Assembly: GCA_016748015.1 (NCBI GenBank)
Contig: JAAOMT010000543.1
Coordinates: 62,001 to 126,000 of the forward strand
Origin: Geosiphon pyriformis uo1
Taxonomy: Eukaryota; Fungi; Glomeromycota
DNA length: 64,000 nucleotides
Direction of reading: 5' to 3'
The translations under genes and the position numbers were made by a program. Below, piece after piece: positions 32,029 through 44,932 of the stretch (position 1 is the stretch's first letter; every line of letters begins with the position of its first letter). Below the pieces are notes generated by a model, which saw only the letters and a program-made list of their open reading frames with translations, was not told where the DNA came from and made no database searches.

Positions 32029-32951
32029 TGTTATAAGTAATTATTTAAAGTGTTGATACAAATAACAAACCCATAACTTGATGTTTAATAGCTATTAATT
32101 ATGATAATTTCTGAAGATTTTTATGATTTGAAGGTTTTGGTTGAGTTTTTTGTATAAAAGATAAAGATTCAAGTATTGTTTTAGTAACTTTCCAGAATGT
32201 TTATTTTGTTAATTTCTGTTTTCAGTGTGGTGACTGGTTTATTCTAGCAGTTGTGTCCTTTTGGTAAGCTATTCTTAATTTTATAAGTTTTTTATTCTTA
32301 TTTTATAAGTCTTTTATCAGGCTATTCTTAACATCAAATTATTCAGTACTTAATCTCTTAATTAATTAGTAAACAATAAAAAAAACAAAAGAGAATAAAA
32401 TAAAATAAAGAATTAGTATTCTGTCAATAGTCATAATCAAAAACTATTGGTTCAATATAATTAAGTATCAATAACTATCAACATAAAGTGTTGATAATAG
32501 GAAGATTGATTAATATTTTTTAATTAACAATAATAATATAAATTAAAAAGTAATAGATAATTTTATTGATATTGATTATTTTTACTTCAAGTTATAATAT
32601 TTTATCTTTTGAAAGAAAAGGTATTTAGAACAATTAATTATTTCTAACTTCTTGTTTGGGTTAATTTGGAAGTAAATTCTGTCTTTTTTGCTTCTAATAT
32701 TCTTGCTATATATACATATTTCTCATTATATGAGATCTCACACATTTATGAGCAATATGTTATAATTTCTCAAACAATACTCATATTGTTAAGCAATATG
32801 TCATAATTTTTTAAAAATGTTTCATATTGCTGAGCAATATGCTCTAATTTACTAACAATATGTTCACATGTTAATTACTATTCTTTTATTAGTCTATTTT
32901 TTCTATTTGTTTTTTCTACTACTTTTTTTGTACTCTTTTTTATAAGTAATA
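32029..32951 (-). repeat. 3' LTR of Gypsy element (~923 bp)
   Basis: Colinear with 43994-44932; differences are mostly transitions. Confidence 0.9.
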
Positions 32952-33487
32952 TTATCTCTTCTTTTAATATTAAGCTTTGTTAAAATTTTTATTTAAATTA
33001 GGTCTATTACTTTTTTTTCTAATAATATTTGTTTAACTCTGGTTTTTATGTTTTTTATTTGTGAATTGTTTATTTTTTCTTACAGGTTAATGGTTATTGT
33101 TTCTATTTTTAAGTATAATAGTATTTCTGAGTAATTTTGAAATATAGTATGTAGTTAATATATTGTTTTAATATGTAGTATTGAATTTGTTTTTTTTCTA
33201 ATAAAGTTTTCAATGTGTTGTACTATCTTTTGATTAAATATTCTCTTAAATTTGTTAATATATAATTCATAAATATTCAGTTTTTGTCTTAACTAATAGT
33301 AATAGTATGATATTAGAAGTTGTTTTATTCATTGTTTCTAATTTTCTTTTGTTAGTTTTTTTGTTGGAACAATTATGAGTATTTTCCTAAAAGTATTCTT
33401 TACTTTTTTTATTATTTTATTAGACTCATGTTTTGTTTGTATCAGTGGTCATTAATATAATGTACTTTTACTTTTTTTTCTTTTTTG

Positions 33488-33558
33488 GTGTTTCAATAGC
33501 AAATTGTTTAGTGTTTTAATAGCAAACTGTTTGGTGTTTTAATAGCAAATTGTTTGGT
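33488..33558. repeat. 23-bp tandem repeat x3 (GTGTTT(C/T)AATAGCAAA(T/C)TGTTT(A/G))
   Basis: Directly visible between integrase and the 3' LTR. Confidence 0.85.
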
Positions 33559-35770
33559 GATTAATAATAATTTCTATATTTAATTGTTGTTGATTTATGG
33601 CTTGGAATAATTGCTAAGCCATTGTGTAAATATGGTCTGAGATTTTCATCTTTTATTGTTGTTTTTGTTGTATCTGCTAGATTTTTATATATTTTTTTGG
33701 TTAATTAATTTTGATGTATTTATGTTAATAATTATGATTGGTTCCAAATTTTATAGAATTTTATCTGGTTAAATTAGTATTTATTGTACTCTTAGTTAAG
33801 AAATATTATTGATAGATAATGATACTATATTGTAATATGATTTCAATCAATTTTTATATACTGTTTTAATCAAAATTTTATTGTCTTATCTTAATTTATA
33901 AGCTCTATTTCTTAAAATTTTTTCAATGTAAAATAATTTGTCCCATTTGCGATCAAATTTTCTATTTTATTGTTTTTTTGCTTTGGTACAATGTAAAAGT
34001 ACTTTGTTTTCAATCTTGAATTTAACTAATTTGTCTAATAATTAGTTATCATGCCATTTTTTTTGTTTTGTTTGTGACTTTTAAATGTTTTCAGCAGCTT
34101 TCTATTGTTTGTTTTTTAGAGTTTTTATTAAGTTATATGTTTTTTTAACAATGTTTCTTTGAAGTTGGCTTCTGTTATTAATTTAGTTAGATACATATTG
34201 ACTTTTATTTCAACTAGTAATATTGTTGTTTTACTATATATTAGTTTAAATAGTATTGCTTATATAGTATTTTGCTTTATTGTCTAATAAGTAAATAATA
34301 CTAATAATATAAACAAATTCTATTTATTCTGATTTTTTTGGATAATTTTGGCTATTGTTTCATATAATATTCTATTGAACTTTTCAACTAAGCCATTGGT
34401 TTGTAAATAATATAAAAATAATAATAATCTTTTGATTTCAAATTTTTGACTTAATTTTGTTAATATTCTGTTTATAAAATAAGTTTTTTGATCTAATAAC
34501 AATTTTTTTGAGCATCTGTGTTGGCAAATCAAATTTTGATGAACAAATTTGGCTACAAATTTTGCATATGTTTTTTGAATTGCTTTTGCTTTTGGTCATT
34601 TTGTGTATTTATTGCTTTTATTGGTTATTGTTAATGGTCTGACTAAGTTAATTCTAATTTGATTAAATAATTGTTCTACTTTAATTGGTCTTAATGATTT
34701 ACTGGATTTTGTTCCTCCTTTTTTTTGACAAGCATCACAATTTTGAATATATTAAATAATATCTGGATACATTGATAATCAATAGTATTTTTTTCTGGTT
34801 TTTTTTATGATTGTTTCTTTATAAAAATGTTTTGCTGTTGAATTTAAGTGCATGTTAAACAGTATTGTTTTTTTCTTTGGTTCTGTAATTACTCTGAGTA
34901 GTTGATTTGAATTTTTTCTGTTTTTCTAATATAATATATTTTGGTGAGTAATAAAATATTTTAATTGTTGTTTTATGTTGTTTTGTTTTTTTTGAGATAA
35001 TTTCTTTTTAAACTGTTAAGTATTAATATAATGTTGAAATTGTTGATATTTTTGTGTATTTATCTTTTGTTATATTTTTGGGTTGAAATATTTAAATTTG
35101 TTTTATTTATAACAAGTCATTAGTATTTTTTTTTATAATATATGATATAATTAAATAATAAAAGTTCTATTTTTTATCTTATATGATAATTGTTTCCAAA
35201 TTTTTGCTTCTGAATTGATGTTAATTCTTTGTGATTAGTGTATATATTGAACTTTTAGCTTAAGTATTTTTTCTATTTGATAACAGCCCAATAAATAGCT
35301 AAGTATTCTAATACTAGTGTACTATAATTTTTTTTGGCTAAACTCAAACTTTGGCTGACATATGTCACTAGATGTTCTTATTCATTTAATTTTTTTTAAG
35401 ATAGCTTCCAATACTTGACCAGATGTATTGGTAATAATAATAAATAATTTGCTGTAATCTGAATAGATTAATACTAAAGCTTAAATAAGCTTTCTTTTTA
35501 GTATTTTAAACACTTCTTGTTAAGTTTTTGTTCATTTATATTTAACATTTTTTGCTTGAAGCTAGTAAAGTGGTTAAGCCAATTTGGAGAAGTTCTGGAT
35601 AAAATGTTAATAGTATCTAATAAATCCCAAAAATGCTCTTAATTCTGTCAAATTGGTTAGAACCAGAAAATTCTTGACTATTTTAATCTTGTTTGAATCT
35701 GTTTTAATGTTATTTTTATTTAAAACATGTTCCAAAAACTTAAGTTTAGTTTTTTCAAAGAAGTATTTGG

Positions 35771-38740
35771 TGTTACCGAAAGATTTTCACATTTTTCAAT
35801 GCAAAAATTACAACACATACAATGAAAATTAACATCAAAATCATGCAAAAAAGGCCTACATTATCACACTTAATCAACAAAATCAGCCAGCAATCTGGAA
35901 ATAAATGATCAGTAATCAATCTAATTACAACAAAAAAATATGGCACAATCCAACAGTTTAACTAAGTTGGATATAAAGAAATCTTGGCAAATTAAAAAAC
36001 ACCAATGGAAATGAATGATTGATGCATGTAATCAGATAACAACAGGTTTTGTTATGCTCCAAAATTCTCATACACCCTTATTAGAACAATCTAACATTCC
36101 AGATCTGTGATCAATGGTTAAAAGTAGTTACCAAGAAATGTAATCAATTGATCTACTTCTGATTATGTTGATCATAATTACAATTGGTATCATTGATTTA
36201 CAATCAATGTTCTAGATCCAGCCATCTAAAATCTGATCATTTAAATTACTAGCTTTTGGATAAATAACAGGCCAAATAAGCTCATCATAAATTGATTAAT
36301 TAAATGTATATAAATAATTGATGTATTTTAAATAGTTATAATATAGTATGTAGATCTGATGTAATTTAGCTATATATACAGCTCCTTTGTTAGTTCAGAA
36401 AAGTATCAGTTCAATACTGAGCCAACTCTTTGCTATAGTTTTATAGTGAGCAGTTAGTTTTTTCCTCTACTTTTTACACTCTCTCTCCCCTTTCTATGCT
36501 CTAAATACTTGTCATTACAATCTCAAATATGTCTTCCCATATTTCTTATCATCATTTGGAATCATGTTGTTTATAATCTTTTACTTACTTGTTATCACCA
36601 TTTTAAGTTGTTCTATTACTTCCGATCTTTTAAATCATGTGTTATCATCATTTCACATTAAGTCTTGTTTCACCAAACAAGTTGTTAAATATAAAAATAA
36701 GTAATAAAGTATCATATTGTTAGAGAGTGGTCTCAACAATAAAAAGTTTAAGCAAAATCTATTTCAGTTATGTTTAACTTTTATAATTTCTTTTATAATT
36801 CCTATAACTTTGTTTTCAAAGTGGGCATTTAAACACCACACCCTTTTGACGACTAATTAAAAGAATTTTGGTTACATATTTCTTTGAGTAATTGGTTTCA
36901 CTCCTTGTTGCTGGTTGCACTTTTGATACATATAAAGAGATGTGACTTTTCTTTTCTCTTTTTCAAATACTTAAGACTGGTTCTTGCCCAAAAACAAATA
37001 ATAATGACAATACTTTCTTTTACTTTTAATGACCTTATTACGTACTTTTTTTGTTCTCCCACTTACTAAAATAGTCTATACACCCATGATATGCTAAAGT
37101 CAGTAGTATAATCATGGTAATGTGTGTTCCAGGTGAAAGTTATTGTTATTGCTAAGAAGTTACAAATCCTATAGCTTTCACTCAGTAACATATGGTGTCT
37201 TTTGTTGTCAGTATGGAGACAACTATGAATATTTAAATAACCTTTAGATATCTCAGAGGACTTTGATCTTCCCTAAAGAGGAAGAAAAATTTAACAATTT
37301 ATAGGAGCTCATTTTTCAAAGATGGAGAAAATGTTACTGGAAGATTTTCACACTTTTCAATGCAAAAATTACAACACATACAATGGAAATTAACATCAAA
37401 ATCATACGAAAAAGTTCTACATCATTACACTTAATCAACAAAATTAGCCAGCAATTTGGAAATAAATAATCAGCAATCAATCTAATTACAACAAAAAAAT
37501 ATGGCACGATCCAATAGTTTAACTAAGTTGGATATAAAAAAATCTTGACAAACTAAGAAACACCAATGGAAATGAATGATTGATGCATATAATCAGATAA
37601 CAACAGGTTTTGTTATGCTCCAAAATTCTCATACACCCTTATTAGAACAATCTAACATTCCAGATCTGCAATCAATAGTTAAAAGTAGTTACCAAGAAAT
37701 GTAATCAATTGATCTACTTCTGATTATGTTGATCATAATTACAATTGGTATCATTGATTTACAATCAATGTTCTAGATCCAGCCATCTAAAATCTGATCA
37801 TCTAAATTACTAGCTTTTGGATAAATAACAGGCCAAGTAAGCTCATCATAAATTGATTAATTAAATGTATATAAATAATTGATGTATTTTAAATAGTTAT
37901 AATATAATATGTAGATCTGATGTAATTTAGCTATATATACAGCTCCTTTGTTAGTTCAGAAAAGTATCAGTTTAATACTGAGCCAACTCTTTGCTATAGT
38001 TTTATAGTGAGCAGTTAGTTTTCTCCTCTACTTTTTACACTCTCTCTCCCCTTTCTATGCTCTAAATACTTGTCATTACAATCTCAAATATGTCTTCCCA
38101 TATTTCTTATCACCATTTGGAATCATGTTGTTTATAATCTTTTACTTACTTGTTATCACCATTTTAAGTTGTTCTATTACTTCCGATCTTTTAAATCATG
38201 TGTTATCATCATTTCACATTAAGTCTTGTTTCACCAAACAAGTTGTTAAATATAAAAATAAGTAATAAAGTATCACATTGTTAGAGAGTGGTCTCAAAAA
38301 TAAAAAGTTTAAGCAAAATCTATTTCAGTTATGTTTGACTTTTATAATTTCTTTTATAATTCCTATAACTTTGTTTTCAAAGTGGGCATTTAAACACCAC
38401 ACCCTTTTGACGACTAATTAAAAGAATTCTGGTTACATATTTCTTTGAGTAGTTGGTTTCACTCCTTGTTGCTGATTGCACTTTTGATACATATAAAGAG
38501 ATGTGACTTTTCTTTTCTCTTTTTCAAATACCTAAGACTGGTTCTTGCCCAAAAACAAATAATAATAACAATACTTTCTTTTACTTTTAATAACCTTATT
38601 ATGTATCCCTTTTGCTCTCCCACCTACTGAAATAGTTCATACACTCATGTCAGTAGCATAATCATAGTAATGTGTGTTCTAGGTAAAAGTTATTGTTATT
38701 GCTAAGAAGTTACAAATCCTGTAGCTTTCACCTGATAACA
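35771..38740 (+). mobile_element. Non-autonomous LTR retroelement: LTR 35771-37190, 141-bp internal 37191-37331, LTR 37332-38740; TSD TTGG
   Basis: Both repeats start TGTTAC and end TAACA. TATGGTGTC (PBS-like) directly follows the first LTR; AAAGATGGAGAAAA (PPT) directly precedes the second. TTGG flanks both sides, and removing the element restores the host RT frame LNITKYFFEKTKLKFLEH. Confidence 0.93.
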
Positions 38741-39874
38741 TTGGTTATATTTAATTTCTATTCAGCTCTTTTCAGTTTTTCAAACACTTGTTAAATATAA
38801 TGAAAATAATCATCAAATATTTGTGAAAACATATTGGTATCATCCAAGTAAACTACTATAGATTTCCAAAGTAATCTGGTATAAACAATTTTTATGAGCT
38901 ATTGGAAGGTGGCTGGCATATTGGTTAAGCCAAAAGGCATAATATTAAATTCAAAATTTTCTTTTTTGGTAGTAAAAACAGTTTTTTTTTTATCTTCTGA
39001 GTCATGACTACTTGCTAGTAACCACTGTCTAAATTCAATATGGAAAACTATTTTTTTTCTTCAAAAACATTGAATAGTTTCTGAATTCATAAAGTTGGAT
39101 AATTGTTTTCACAAATTATATTGTTGAGTTTTCTATAATCCACACAAAAATAGACCTTTCTATTTTTTTTCTAGATTAATACCACTGGTAATAATTATAG
39201 ACTTATTGATAATTGAATTAATCTGTTGTTCAACATTCTGTTAATTTTCTGTTAAATGATTTTATGGCTGGCTGGTAGTATTTTGTATGCTTTTTGTTTA
39301 ATTGGTATTGTATCTTCTGTTTTGATTTGGTGTTGGATAATATCAGTTCTGCCAAATTCGTTTTTACTGATAAAAATGTCAATAAAATTATTAAGTAATA
39401 TCTTAAGTTGCATATATTAAAATAAATCTAAATTTTCCAAGTTTATTTGTTTTAATTGTTTTGATTAAAGCAAATAACACTTTTTCTATCTATATATTGT
39501 TTGTAATGTAATATCCACATATCTACAAAATTGTAAAAAATCTGAAATGGTGTTTGGTAGTTAGTTCTTAACTTTAATGCTTAAGTATTCAATAATAATT
39601 CTTTTAAGTATTTCAATGGGGTCTTTAATTGTATTGTAGATAAGAATTTTGATGTGTTTATAGTTTTTGGCCAATATGTAGAGAATGATAATCCCAATAT
39701 TTTCTGATTTACAAATAGTAGCTTTGATTTCAAAAATCTGAAACTAATTCTTTACTTTTTTTTCTATAACTAATAAGTACTAGTTATATGAAAAAATAAA
39801 AATGAATTGATTAGTGAAAATAATTTCTTTTTTATTAATGGTTTTTTCTTTTGCTATATTAATTGGTACATCTA

Positions 39875-40300
39875 TTTTATCTGTAAATTCGAATCCACTT
39901 ATTTTTTTGCTGTAATTTCTACTTCTTCTCTTTTTTTTACTAAAACTAACTGAGCTATTTTTACCAAAGACAGGAATATTGCCTGTGCTATTTTTTTATT
40001 TGGTTTAATAGTATATTCTTTTTTTAAGTTATTTTGTAGTATTGCAATAATATTTTCTACATATTCTGCATTAATTATTCTTCTTTTAATGTTAATTTTT
40101 TTCTTTGCTAAACTAAATTTAGAGACTAATTAAATTATTGTCATTGCTAGAATTTTTAGTACTATTTTCAAATCTATACTGATGTGCAAATAGAGTTCTA
40201 ATCAGATGACAGTTTTTTCTAAATATTTGAAATTAAATCTTGTATCAGTATTATGTACGCATTCTGGTATAATACTTTTATTATTATTGCTGAACTATTT
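39875..40300 (-). pseudogene. dUTPase domain within Gypsy pol
   Basis: PECVHNTDTRFNFKY (motif 1), VSKFSLAKK (motif 2), IINAEYVENI (motif 3), KIAQAIF (motif 4), SGFEFTD (motif 5). Deviations from consensus are mostly G>A/C>T changes. Confidence 0.85.
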
Positions 40301-43300
40301 TAAATAAAATTGGAACTATTGTTGTTGTTATTATCAAAATCTAAATTGCAATTAAATTTTGATTCCAATTCTGAAATACAGCTGCTAATTGGTTCTTTCT
40401 TTTCAGAAATTGAGTAGATTATTTGTAATAATAGATTGTAAATAAAATCACAATTATTACAGTATTCAAAGTCACTAAGAATTAGACAATACTTACAAAG
40501 TCTGGCATTTAACTGTTCTAAATGCTGTTCTTGCTCTTTTCTAATTGGTGTTAGATTTTGGTAGTGTTTATGAAATTATTCAAAATTATTCTTAATGTCA
40601 TTAAAAATGTCAAAAATTAGGATATATTTAAGTTCAGGAAAAGTTAGTAGGTTATTTTTGATTTCCAGTAGTTTACTGAATGAAACACTTTTAGTTTTGC
40701 ACTTACTATTCTTCATATTTTATGTTCATTATGTGGATAATCTTTCAGATGTTTCATCACTTTTTTCCAAGTGACATTAATTGAAGTCTTTTTTTATATT
40801 CAGCTGTTAATTAAAATTGTATATTAACATAATTTATTGTATGTTTCTTGCCCAAAAATGTCATTCCATATTTTTTTGTTAAGAAGAATTGTTTTACATG
40901 TAAAACAAAGCTTATTGTTTTATTTTCTCTGTTATTTGAGTTGTCCAAAGTGTTTAAGAAAGCATGGTCAACAATAATACTTAATTGCAATCAACTATTT
41001 CTCATTATTGCCACAATATATGTCTATTGTTAACAATTTTTTGTTACAATTGACACATATTAGCTTGGATCAATAATAATTTGTCTAACTTTAGGGTGTA
41101 GTAGTGTATAGAATATAAGTAGAAATAATAGTTTGAAGTTAGTTTTCTTCTTTTTCCTTTCCTTTTTCTTTTTTTCTTAGGTAAGTACTAATAGTAATTT
41201 GTTGTGGTTTTTGTCAGTCCATAAAATTTGGTAGGCTTTTTAAATAGGTTTTTTTTCTTTTTTCTTTAGTTCAATTAGTGGTGTTTAGATGGTGTTGGTT
41301 TTAAAGTAACCACAAATAACAAATATCCGAATTTGCTGATTATTTTAACTAAGCTGTAGTTCTTGAGTGTTCTAGTCAAAAACAGTATTGGTCTTGGACA
41401 ACCAGTCATTACCAACTAGAGCTTAGTATTGGGTGGCTTTTATGAAAAAAATTTTGATGAGTGCTGTGATGCTATTGATTTCAAATAGAAAGTCATCAAT
41501 TTCACCAATGAGTGTTTTTGTTATTTTATTAGCAGTAATAATTCAGATGTTAGCAATTCAATTAACTTGGCAACCTAATTGGTTCATAAGTTGTTGTGTG
41601 ATGATGCTGCTTGCTAAATTACTATCAAAAATTAGCTTAATAGGATGGCTATTAACTTTAGCATTAGTATACATAATAGTAATAAGTTTAGTATTAAGAG
41701 TGGTTTCACTAAAAAGAGGATTAATATCAGTTCTTTGATTTCAAAAGAGAATATTGTAACAAGTGATTTGTCTTCTGTAATAGTTGCTGGTAAGATATTG
41801 TTGTTAATTAAGATATTATTGGATTCTATATTATTAGATAAAACATTTACTGGAATAATCAAGAGACTTAAATAGTCCTAAAAATTCAGGTTTTAGATAT
41901 ACCTAGTTCTTAAACTGTGCTAATGTGATTTTAATAGCTATTGCAATGAATTGAAGATCAGTTGGTATATAATTATTACTGATTTTCAATTTTGTGTGTG
42001 GTTAATTCTCAGTTTTTGGTTTCCAATTGGCACAGTAGTTTGGAGTAATATTTGAATTTGTTGATATTAATAAATAATTTGTGACTATGGCTAATATATT
42101 ACAGATGTTGAAGTTTGATACACTAGAGGTAAGTATATTAATTGTTGCATTATTGAGATTTAATAAGACTAATATTAATCTTAATTTGAATGATAATTCA
42201 GAGTTTGAAACTAATAATCAAAGTTTCTATATTAATTTCCTAATTATTAGTTATTAAGTCTAACATAACAATCTATTTTTAAATGTTTTTATTTACTACA
42301 ATAGTAGCAAATACAAGTTTCTTGTTGCTACAATGAATTTGTTGATGATGACATATACAACTGTCTTTGGAAACAATTAGAGTTTTTTTAATTTTCATAT
42401 TGTTATAAAGATTAATAGATAGCTTAATTATTGTTAGTTAAGTATCTCTTAATTTTTTGGTTGATTAAATTACTGAATTGTTTTAGTTTAAAATTTAATT
42501 TAGATGATTCATTCATTATTAAGTTTACAGCTTGAACATGGCTGGCTTCTAATTTAGCTAATTTAAAATCTTTGGCATGTATTACTGTATTCTGTAAAAT
42601 TTTTAAATATAATAGGTATATGCATTACAATAAACTGCTGTATAAGCCATAAATAAATTGGTTTAAAATCTGTAATACTGTAAAGTATTTAGTATTGATT
42701 GCTTGAATTTAGTGCAAATTTTTATGGAAGCATTCTAAGTAAATATTAAATGCTTTATTGTCATCTTGTTTAATTATCATAAAGCTAGTTGCTAAATAAT
42801 TAATTCTATTATTATTGCTCAAATATTATAAAAACTTGGTTTTGAACATGTCAAAGGTAAGAGGTTAATTGATTAAGCTCTAATATTATAAGTTGTCAAT
42901 ATTCTGTAGAAAGTATGAAATTGTTTGAAAAGTTTTAGTGTTATTTCAATTATTGACTGCAATTGCTTTGGTAATGTTGTTTAACTATGCTTAGACATTG
43001 TCTTCTTTGCTGATAAATTTTTCAATTTTGACAATAAGTATATATGCCATTGGTGTTATTATTTGCTATAGTTATAATGATTGTTGCAGTTGTTATTAAA
43101 CAGCAATTGGTGCAATTGGTAGTGAATCAATCACAATTACTAGAAGTAAGTTTTGCTAAATAATAGAAACAGAATTTGGATTGTTTGAGTGTTGCTAAGT
43201 TAAAACAATCAGAATTTGTATTTCCAGATTTTTTAGATTTGGGCTTTGCTTATTATTTTTCCAATTATTGTCTTTTTTTTCTTCAAAGTCAGTTATTTCT

Positions 43301-43993
43301 TAAGGACTAGTAGCTCCAAAATTTGGTTGTGGTGATAGTGATTGATGTTTTAATAGCATTGTTAATCATAAATTAAATTCCTTGCTATAAATTTTCAATA
43401 GTTTGGCTTTTTTTTGTTTGTTTTGAAACAGGATTTTTGCTAAGAGTGTTTTCACATTTGTTGTGAACACATTTGCTAATGTTATGTTGATAGTACTTTT
43501 AGGTATATAGTAATATAATAGATTGATTGGTGATTTAACTCTTGGTTTTTTCCAAGTAAGTGGTTGTATCTGCTTTAATATTTTTGCTGGTGTTTGCAAT
43601 TTTTTTTTTTTTTTGTTGGCAAAAGTAATAAAAAATTTTTGTTTAGTGTATTTTTTAATTTTCTTATTTATTTCTATAATTAATAGTGCAAATAAATAAT
43701 TTTGTAGAAGTATAATGCTTTAAAGTAGTTTATTATAGAAATTTTTAAGGACAGATTTTGGATGTTTTTGGCCTTTTAAGTAGTATACAATTTTTTTGTT
43801 AACATAATAATTGAAAACTGATTCTATTGATTAATTATTACTTATCAGTCCGAAATAAATATAATAATATTGGAATAATACTTTTATAAATTCCAAATGG
43901 TTGGTTTCTATTATTTCTAATTTTGTTACTGTTTTGAATATTTGTTGTTAGTGCTAGTTTTCTATTAAATTATACTTTACAGGAAACACTAAA

Positions 43994-44932
43994 TGTTACA
44001 GATAATTATTTGAAATGTTAATACAAATAACAAACCCATAATTTGGTGTTTAGTAGCTATTAATAATAATAATTTCTAAAAGTTTTTGTAATCTGAAGAT
44101 TTTGGTTGAGTCTTTTGTATAATAAACAGAGATTCAAGTATTGTTTTAGTAGTTTTCTGAAATGTTTATTCCATTAATTTCTGTCTTCAACATAGTGGTC
44201 AGTTTATTCTGGCAGTCATGTCCTTCTGGTAAGCTATTCTTAATTTTATGAGTTTCCTACCTTTATTTCATGAGTTTTTTATCAAACTATCCTTAACATC
44301 AAATTATTTAATGCTTAATTTTTTAATCAATTAATAGACAACAAAGAAAACAAAAAAGAATAAAATAAAAAAAATAAGAAAAAAAAATAAAAAATTAATA
44401 TCCTGTTAATAGCCATAATCAAAAATTATTGGTTTAATGTAATTAAGTATCAGTAATTATCAACATAAAGTATTGATAGTGGAAAAATTGATTAATATTT
44501 TTTAATTAACAATGATAACATGAATTGAAGGGTAATAAGTAATTTTATTAATATTGATAATTTTTACTTTAAGTTATAATATTCTATCTTTTGAAAAAAA
44601 GAGTATTTGGAACAATTAGTTATTTTTAATTTTTTGTCTGAGTTGATTTGAAAGTAAATTCTGTTTTTTTTGCTTTTAATACTCTTGTTATATATATATA
44701 TTTTTTGTTATATAAGATCTTACATATTTGTGAACAATGTGTAATAATTTTTTAAACAATACTCATATTGCTAAGTAATGTACTGTAATTTTCTAACAAT
44801 GCTCCACATTGTTGAACAATATGCTCTACTTCACTAACAATATGCTCACATGCTAATTACTATTTTTTTATTAGTTCATTTTTTTATCTGTTTTTCTTAC
44901 TACTTTTTTTGTACTCTTTTCTATAAATAACA
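43994..44932 (-). repeat. 5' LTR of Gypsy element (~939 bp)
   Basis: TGTTACA...TAACA; colinear with 32029-32951. Confidence 0.9.

Follow-up and report, generated by a model that had tools for sequence, protein, structure and literature searches.

A probable non-autonomous LTR retrotransposon family, about 95% LTR by length, in the fungus Geosiphon pyriformis

We have examined here an insertion within a 64,000-nucleotide stretch of Geosiphon pyriformis uo1 DNA (contig JAAOMT010000543.1, positions 62,001 to 126,000), which is referred to as the window. BLAST within the window identifies a direct repeat (35751–37196 and 37312–38745) with 94.6% identity, and pairwise alignment places the repeat starts at 35771 and 37332 (TGTTAC...) and the ends at 37190 and 38740 (...TAACA). 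The arrangement of two LTRs around a short core that was proposed in a preliminary description of this DNA is borne out (Table 1). The raw repeat appeared to begin at 35751 because an 11-mer, TTTTTCAAAGA, lies at both 35751–35761 and 37313–37323, at equal offset 10–20 bp upstream of LTR1 and LTR2. It is part of the host RT sequence in the first position and of the core in the second, other family copies lack a match of this type upstream of the 5’ LTR, and the coincidence is probably due to chance. About 95% of the 2970 bp element is LTR, and the ratio of element length to twice the LTR length is 1.05. The TG..CA ends, the PBS-like TGGTGTC two bases beyond LTR1, and the polypurine tract against LTR2 that had been described earlier are all present: intact copies throughout the family have TGTTAC...GTAACA termini, LTR1 is followed by a TA spacer and then TGGTGTC (for which TGGTGCC is the commonest reading in other copies), and the polypurine tract is retained elsewhere with G>A changes. 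In an LTR-only comparison, LTR1 and LTR2 differ by 55 mismatches, 53 of which are transitions, together with one 11-bp indel, and among 38 family LTRs the nearest relative of LTR1 is LTR2, with 96.1% identity.

Table 1. Features of the element and its host in the window, and duplications and tandem arrays of the family elsewhere in the genome.
Feature	Position or locus	Strand	Basis or remark
Host element, decayed Ty3/Gypsy-like, interrupted in RT	32029..44930	-	LTR pair, and RT/integrase motifs by eye
Left target-site duplication TTGG	35767..35770	+	Read directly; same as 38741-38744
5’ LTR, 1420 bp, TGTTACC...AGTAACA	35771..37190	+	BLAST and pairwise alignment
TATA-like box TATATATAC, LTR position 601-609, candidate promoter	36371..36379	+	Conserved in LTR alignment
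Internal core, non-coding, 141 bp	37191..37331	+	Genome matches and alignment of 25 copies
Putative primer-binding site TGGTGTCTTTTG, 2 bases past LTR	37193..37204	+	Other copies read TGGTGCCT[T/C]TTG
Polypurine tract AAAGATGGAGAAAA, 13/14 purines, abuts 3’ LTR	37318..37331	+	Read directly
3’ LTR, 1409 bp	37332..38740	+	BLAST, pairwise alignment and LTR comparison
Right target-site duplication TTGG	38741..38744	+	Read directly
Duplication TTGG	Window copy and C630		
Duplication CTGC	C648:570 kb and C460		
Duplication CCAG	C701		
Duplication CCAA	C666		
Duplication ATGT	C44		
Duplication TTGA	C651		
Duplication TTGT	A solo LTR		
Transition-tolerant duplication pairs			Examples: ATAT/ATGT, TTGG/CTGG, GTGT/GTGC, TCAT/CCAT, CTGG/CCAG
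Three-LTR array	C773		Third LTR truncated
Three-LTR array	C44		ATGT at both ends
Three-LTR array	C674		Inferred from two partial loci; middle LTR apparently split by ~6.7 kb insertion

The sequence that the element interrupts is a decayed Ty3/Gypsy-like element, whose own LTRs (32029–32949 and 43994–44930, ~0.92 kb each) are 82% identical. Removal of the insertion together with one TTGG yields the minus-strand reading ...NIMPFGLTNMPATFQ-stop-...VVYLDD...NIT followed directly by KYFFEKTKLKFLEH...LRAFLGFIRYY, with the insertion point 36 residues past YLDD (33 amino acids and 3 stops), and further downstream are stretches, interrupted by many stops, that resemble RNase H and integrase (LQTNGLVEKFN). 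A perfect 4-bp target-site duplication within a Gypsy RT had been noted previously, and both the TTGG on either side and the restoration of the host RT reading upon excision agree with this. RT and integrase motifs in the host were assigned by eye, by comparison with the general organization of Ty3/Gypsy polyproteins, and the Gypsy identity of the host is read from them because Pfam searches of short stop-free pieces of the RT and integrase gave zero matches. We also note that the 3’ region of the host contains, at 33484–33562, an overlapping tandem repeat in which a 33-nt motif occurs three times at 23 bp spacing.

At first sight the locus resembles a 1.56-kb tandem duplication, and one could consider a one-off event of this sort, or a single internal deletion following insertion, or a mis-assembly, the more so as the short contigs of one DNA sample, possibly the source, include no read or contig spanning the whole structure. 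However, we give such one-off origins almost no credence. The same structure recurs at ~22 loci that differ in their flanking sequence and target-site duplication, and in a public DNA run, which may derive from the source sample, one contig of 89 bases crosses from LTR1 into the core with zero differences. The genome searched comprises 128 Mb in 792 contigs, and the counts are lower bounds. The census gives ~25 cores, every one of them complete; the core probe has 23 whole-length matches genome-wide, every first-look candidate proving to be a whole core, with two further diverged cores at C702:2.00 Mb and C555, and no partial core matches were found genome-wide at E<=10. A 222-bp probe containing the LTR end, the core, and the LTR start matches full-length at 10 further loci with 81–94% identity, and at ~15 more from the last LTR bases onward, and the full 2.97 kb of the window copy aligns at ten loci with 82–92% identity. 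A 26-mer at the PPT/LTR junction occurs 21 times, at cores only, compared with 0 for a control. Searching with the core and its LTR junctions, as had been suggested, thus recovers further copies with the same core and different target-site duplications.

The sequences flanking the copies differ between loci, as do the perfect 4-bp duplications, which we observe at no fewer than nine elements or solo LTRs (Table 1), and about ten more duplication pairs match once one or two transitions are allowed. The central dinucleotide is TG or CA in 9/9 of the perfect duplications, relative to a dinucleotide background of 11.3% (P ~3e-9), and this bias points to an integrase with a target preference for N-TG/CA-N. 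Within the set of 38 aligned LTRs, the two LTRs are mutual nearest neighbours in all 11 of the 11 two-LTR elements, with identities of 87–97% within an element and of at most 94% to any other copy. Because the same core is present at ~22 loci with different duplications, and because LTRs pair within elements, the short LTR-core-LTR form has evidently itself retrotransposed, in multiple independent insertions. The preliminary description had also reckoned with a structure occurring only once and derived by post-insertion deletion, and that account fails against the number of loci and the pairing of LTRs in each element.

Between the LTRs of a single element, 93–100% of the differences are transitions, and across the 38 LTR copies the C>T/G>A rate is ~18–22% at CpA, CpC, and CpT, and 43% at CpG. 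Judged from these substitutions, the family has undergone a RIP-like, transition-only hypermutation that does not have the CpA bias of Neurospora RIP. Such hypermutation renders LTR divergence useless as a clock here, and present activity is unlikely, since all of the copies are old and hypermutated, with LTR pairs only 87–97% identical.

The longest ORF in the element is 61 amino acids, and the four longest LTR ORFs have no Pfam match below E = 0.25. The element has no gag, pol, or other ORF, and by this measure is non-coding and non-autonomous. With no ORF longer than 61 amino acids and no Pfam match, mobilization in trans is the only reading available, and we infer that this is how the family moved. 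The window element thus very probably belongs to an LTR retrotransposon family of many copies that is non-coding and non-autonomous, ~95% LTR in composition, and presumably moved in trans by a partner. The earlier proposal of a non-autonomous family keeping only its priming signals is supported in that the interior has a putative primer-binding site and a polypurine tract, recurs at ~22 loci, and lacks coding capacity. The suggestion that the core might also carry a packaging signal finds no support in RNA structure, as its folding energy is no better than that of shuffled sequences (z = -0.5), and the alifold consensus of 25 aligned core copies is weak (-4.5 kcal/mol). The TATA-like box TATATATAC is conserved in all but one of the 38 aligned LTR copies, in some with C>T at the last base, and the exception has AATATATAC; we regard it as a candidate promoter element, with its function inferred.

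Miniature LTR elements include known special cases (PMC10886601), and the family might accordingly be driven by a small RNA or ribozyme, as in Pol III TRIMs of the Cassandra/Helenus type or retrozymes, or be self-priming in the manner of Tf1. We consider all of these very improbable. A scan of the element against Rfam at E<=1 returned only a chance snoRNA match of 20 bits, with no 5S, tRNA-like, or hammerhead match, and the 1.56-kb unit is long for Pol III. Self-priming was considered and rejected, in that the 5’ end of the PBS has no complement in the LTR other than ACAACAAAA, which is at LTR position 158 and lies upstream of the TATA box.

The PBS was compared with 63 tRNA genes sampled from the genome and representing 33 anticodons. 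The commonest PBS readings across the copies are TGGTGCCTTTTG and TGGTGCCTCTTG, and the best match among the 63 genes is tRNA-Thr(AGU), with only 9 contiguous nucleotides, or 15 if G-U pairs are counted; the second best is tRNA-Phe, with 7. The threonine tRNA is the best candidate for the primer, but only tentatively so given the shortness of the match. Two recurrent sequences that emerged from the PBS searches were discarded. The first, a near-match to the PBS 19-mer with the sequence T[TG]GTGCTTTTTGTCGTCAG, lies inside a LINE ORF2 and not at an LTR end, and the second, TGGTGTCTTCTARCAG, which came up when a perfect tRNA-Thr PBS was sought, is internal to a different repeat and does not follow an LTR end.

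An autonomous partner was not found, in that the genome searches revealed nothing else sharing the core, the PPT junction, or the LTR (for the last of these, among the best 40 of ~195 candidates, which were scored). The host Gypsy was considered as partner and rejected on sequence, as its LTR, 5’ UTR, and 3’ end are dissimilar to those of the family when transitions are treated as near-matches (z -1.0 to 1.9), and the lack of visible similarity between the two LTRs that had been reported earlier holds even with this tolerance. The host PBS also differs from that of the family, and resembles a tRNA-Met PBS once G>A/C>T changes are allowed for. The corresponding junction, GTAACA-TT-TGGTGCTT (LTR end, spacer, and tRNA-Met-like PBS), has an example in the window at 43994–44010 on the minus strand and has 2787 matches genome-wide with <=3 mismatches compared with 567 for a control; by these matches it marks a very abundant Gypsy group that includes the interrupted host. 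The host’s own flanks, TCAC and CTAC, fit N-TG/CA-N after transitions. The family, the host Gypsy, and its abundant group all have LTR ends of the form TGTTA..GTAACA, a spacer of 2 nt, and 4-bp duplications in which CA is central. The family has no RT by which it could be placed within Ty3/Gypsy and its LTR is dissimilar to that of the host, while its termini, spacer, and duplication type are shared, and these common features provide only hints of a Ty3/Gypsy-type partner.

The relationship of the family to its partner could take more than one form. The partner could be the parent, an extant autonomous element whose 1.4-kb LTR is either that of the family or a diverged version of it; the family would then consist of deletion derivatives, and the core would represent the fused PBS and PPT ends of the parental interior. 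Deletion is given as the usual origin of non-autonomous LTR elements in PMC10886601 and PMC13570524, and there are five places at which GTAAYA-TA-TGGTG(C/A)YT occurs without a detected core (C572:406893, C652:64250, C718:2465710, C633:110427, and C75:4859). Moreover, the LTR candidates scored are the best 40 of ~195, which leaves room for an autonomous element with a diverged LTR. However, neither half of the core has a partial match at E<=10, the PPT/LTR junction is found at cores only, no same-strand LTR pairs 4–12 kb apart are present among the best 40 of the ~195 LTR candidates, and the five coreless places are absent from the best 40 of 58 subfamily-A LTR-end candidates. We therefore regard derivation from an extant parent as unlikely. 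It is possible, if doubtful, that the family has no living autonomous relative and was moved by a Gypsy with which it has nothing in common other than the 6-bp LTR termini, the length of the spacer, and the preferred target. If so, the promoter, packaging, and dimerization signals would all reside inside the 1.4-kb LTR, and the family would serve, as a minimal substrate found in nature, to show how little sequence need be recognized in trans by a fungal Gypsy.

The LTRs are themselves of two kinds. Two subfamilies have the LTR body, the terminal GTAACA, and the core in common, and the last ~50 bp of their LTRs are unrelated. A mid-LTR probe gives ~195 first-look LTR candidates compared with ~25 cores, and with the subfamily-A LTR end, for which there are 58 candidates, 11 of the best 40 scored run on into the core; on these grounds most of the family LTRs are solo. 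All five of the solo LTRs inspected (5/5) keep the 4-bp duplication, as expected from recombination within an element. Three tandem arrays, each with three LTRs, were also found (Table 1). The combination of long LTRs and a short interior is reported to favour solo-LTR formation (PMC7497039), and the extreme LTR-to-interior ratio fits with the many solo LTRs and with the tandem arrays.

For a family mobilized in trans, we envisage the following plausible cycle. Transcription by Pol II would start in the 5’ LTR, with the conserved TATA-like box at LTR position ~600 as its presumptive promoter, to give a transcript of ~1.6 kb with the organization R-U5-core-U3-R. The interior of such an RNA would comprise little other than a 2-nt spacer, the primer-binding site, ~110 nt of spacer, and the polypurine tract. 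It could then be packaged by the Gag of an autonomous Ty3/Gypsy-type partner, with reverse transcription primed by a tRNA at the PBS (tRNA-Thr-AGU being the best candidate) and from the PPT. A partner integrase with a preference for N-TG/CA-N would act through the TGTTAC...GTAACA termini to insert the product, generating a 4-bp duplication centred on TG or CA. Following insertion, copies decay through a strong C>T/G>A mutation process, undergo recombination to solo LTRs, and in some cases give rise to three-LTR arrays.

The preliminary description held that the element fits neither TRIMs nor LARDs, and this stands under the strict definitions but not as biology, where it reflects a gap in naming only, as indicated by the continuum in a 2026 sugar-beet survey (PMC13570524). 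TRIMs are defined there and in PMC10886601 by a length below 1 kb (or, in an extended definition, 1.5 kb) and by LTRs of ~100–500 bp. The family resembles them in being non-coding, in having two LTRs around little more than a PBS and PPT, in its target-site duplications, and in its presumed mobilization in trans, three-LTR arrays, and solo LTRs, but at 2970 bp with LTRs of 1409–1420 bp it lies outside the strict TRIM range. LARDs, which according to PMC13570524 exceed 4 kb and have a long non-coding interior that is conserved, are similarly non-coding with long LTRs, but the family element is too short for the class and has an interior of only 141 bp. Cassandra, Helenus, and Ajax (TRIMp3), and the retrozymes, are also miniature elements that are mostly LTR, although their LTRs include 5S-, tRNA-, or hammerhead-derived sequence, none of which was found in the family element at E<=1.

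The sugar-beet survey reports 115 families of non-coding LTR elements forming a continuum from 0.29 to 12.3 kb, with many families at 1.5–4 kb, a range without a name, and a tendency for long LTRs to accompany short interiors. It lists 97 tandem copies, 65 of which have three LTRs, with most retaining duplications, as well as solo LTRs, and 61 of the 115 families have no traceable autonomous relative. Elements of this type commonly occur as tandem forms and solo LTRs, and their partners usually cannot be traced (PMC13570524, PMC10886601). The Geosiphon family corresponds to this continuum in its 1.5–4 kb size, its long LTR and short interior, its three-LTR tandems and solo LTRs, and the absence of a traced partner; it differs in that the sugar-beet elements are from a plant and have 5-bp duplications, whereas those described here are from an early-diverging fungus and have 4-bp duplications. 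The family falls within the already described continuum of non-coding LTR elements, at the extreme ratio of 1.05, and in a fungus.

LTR elements are reported to be strongly expanded in Geosiphonaceae (PMC11952901). The family provides a well-documented example of a non-coding LTR parasite in a fungal lineage that diverged early and has thin transposable-element annotation, and it is of moderate value for that annotation and possibly as a minimal substrate for mobilization in trans. It leaves knowledge of how LTR elements work unchanged, and offers a clean read-out of two properties of the host or partner, namely the N-TG/CA-N integrase preference and the transition-only hypermutation without CpA bias.

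We also note several features of individual loci. In the copy on C630, 48 bp of the LTR start (TGTTACCAGAAG...ACACAT) are duplicated at the beginning of the 3’ LTR, directly past the PPT. The PBS of the LTR family is mimicked by T[TG]GTGCTTTTTGTCGTCAG in the coding region of a LINE family whose ORF2 encodes an endonuclease-RT (e.g. L039 2079–3704). Finally, tRNA genes (Arg, Thr, Leu, Ile, Phe, Arg, Lys, Pro, and others) are densely clustered on the 10.5-kb contig C202, and those within its first ~650 bp are matched a second time, with equal scores, at ~10.07–10.49 kb; the contig may represent a tRNA cluster in tandem repetition, or else a circular or tandem unit that has been collapsed.
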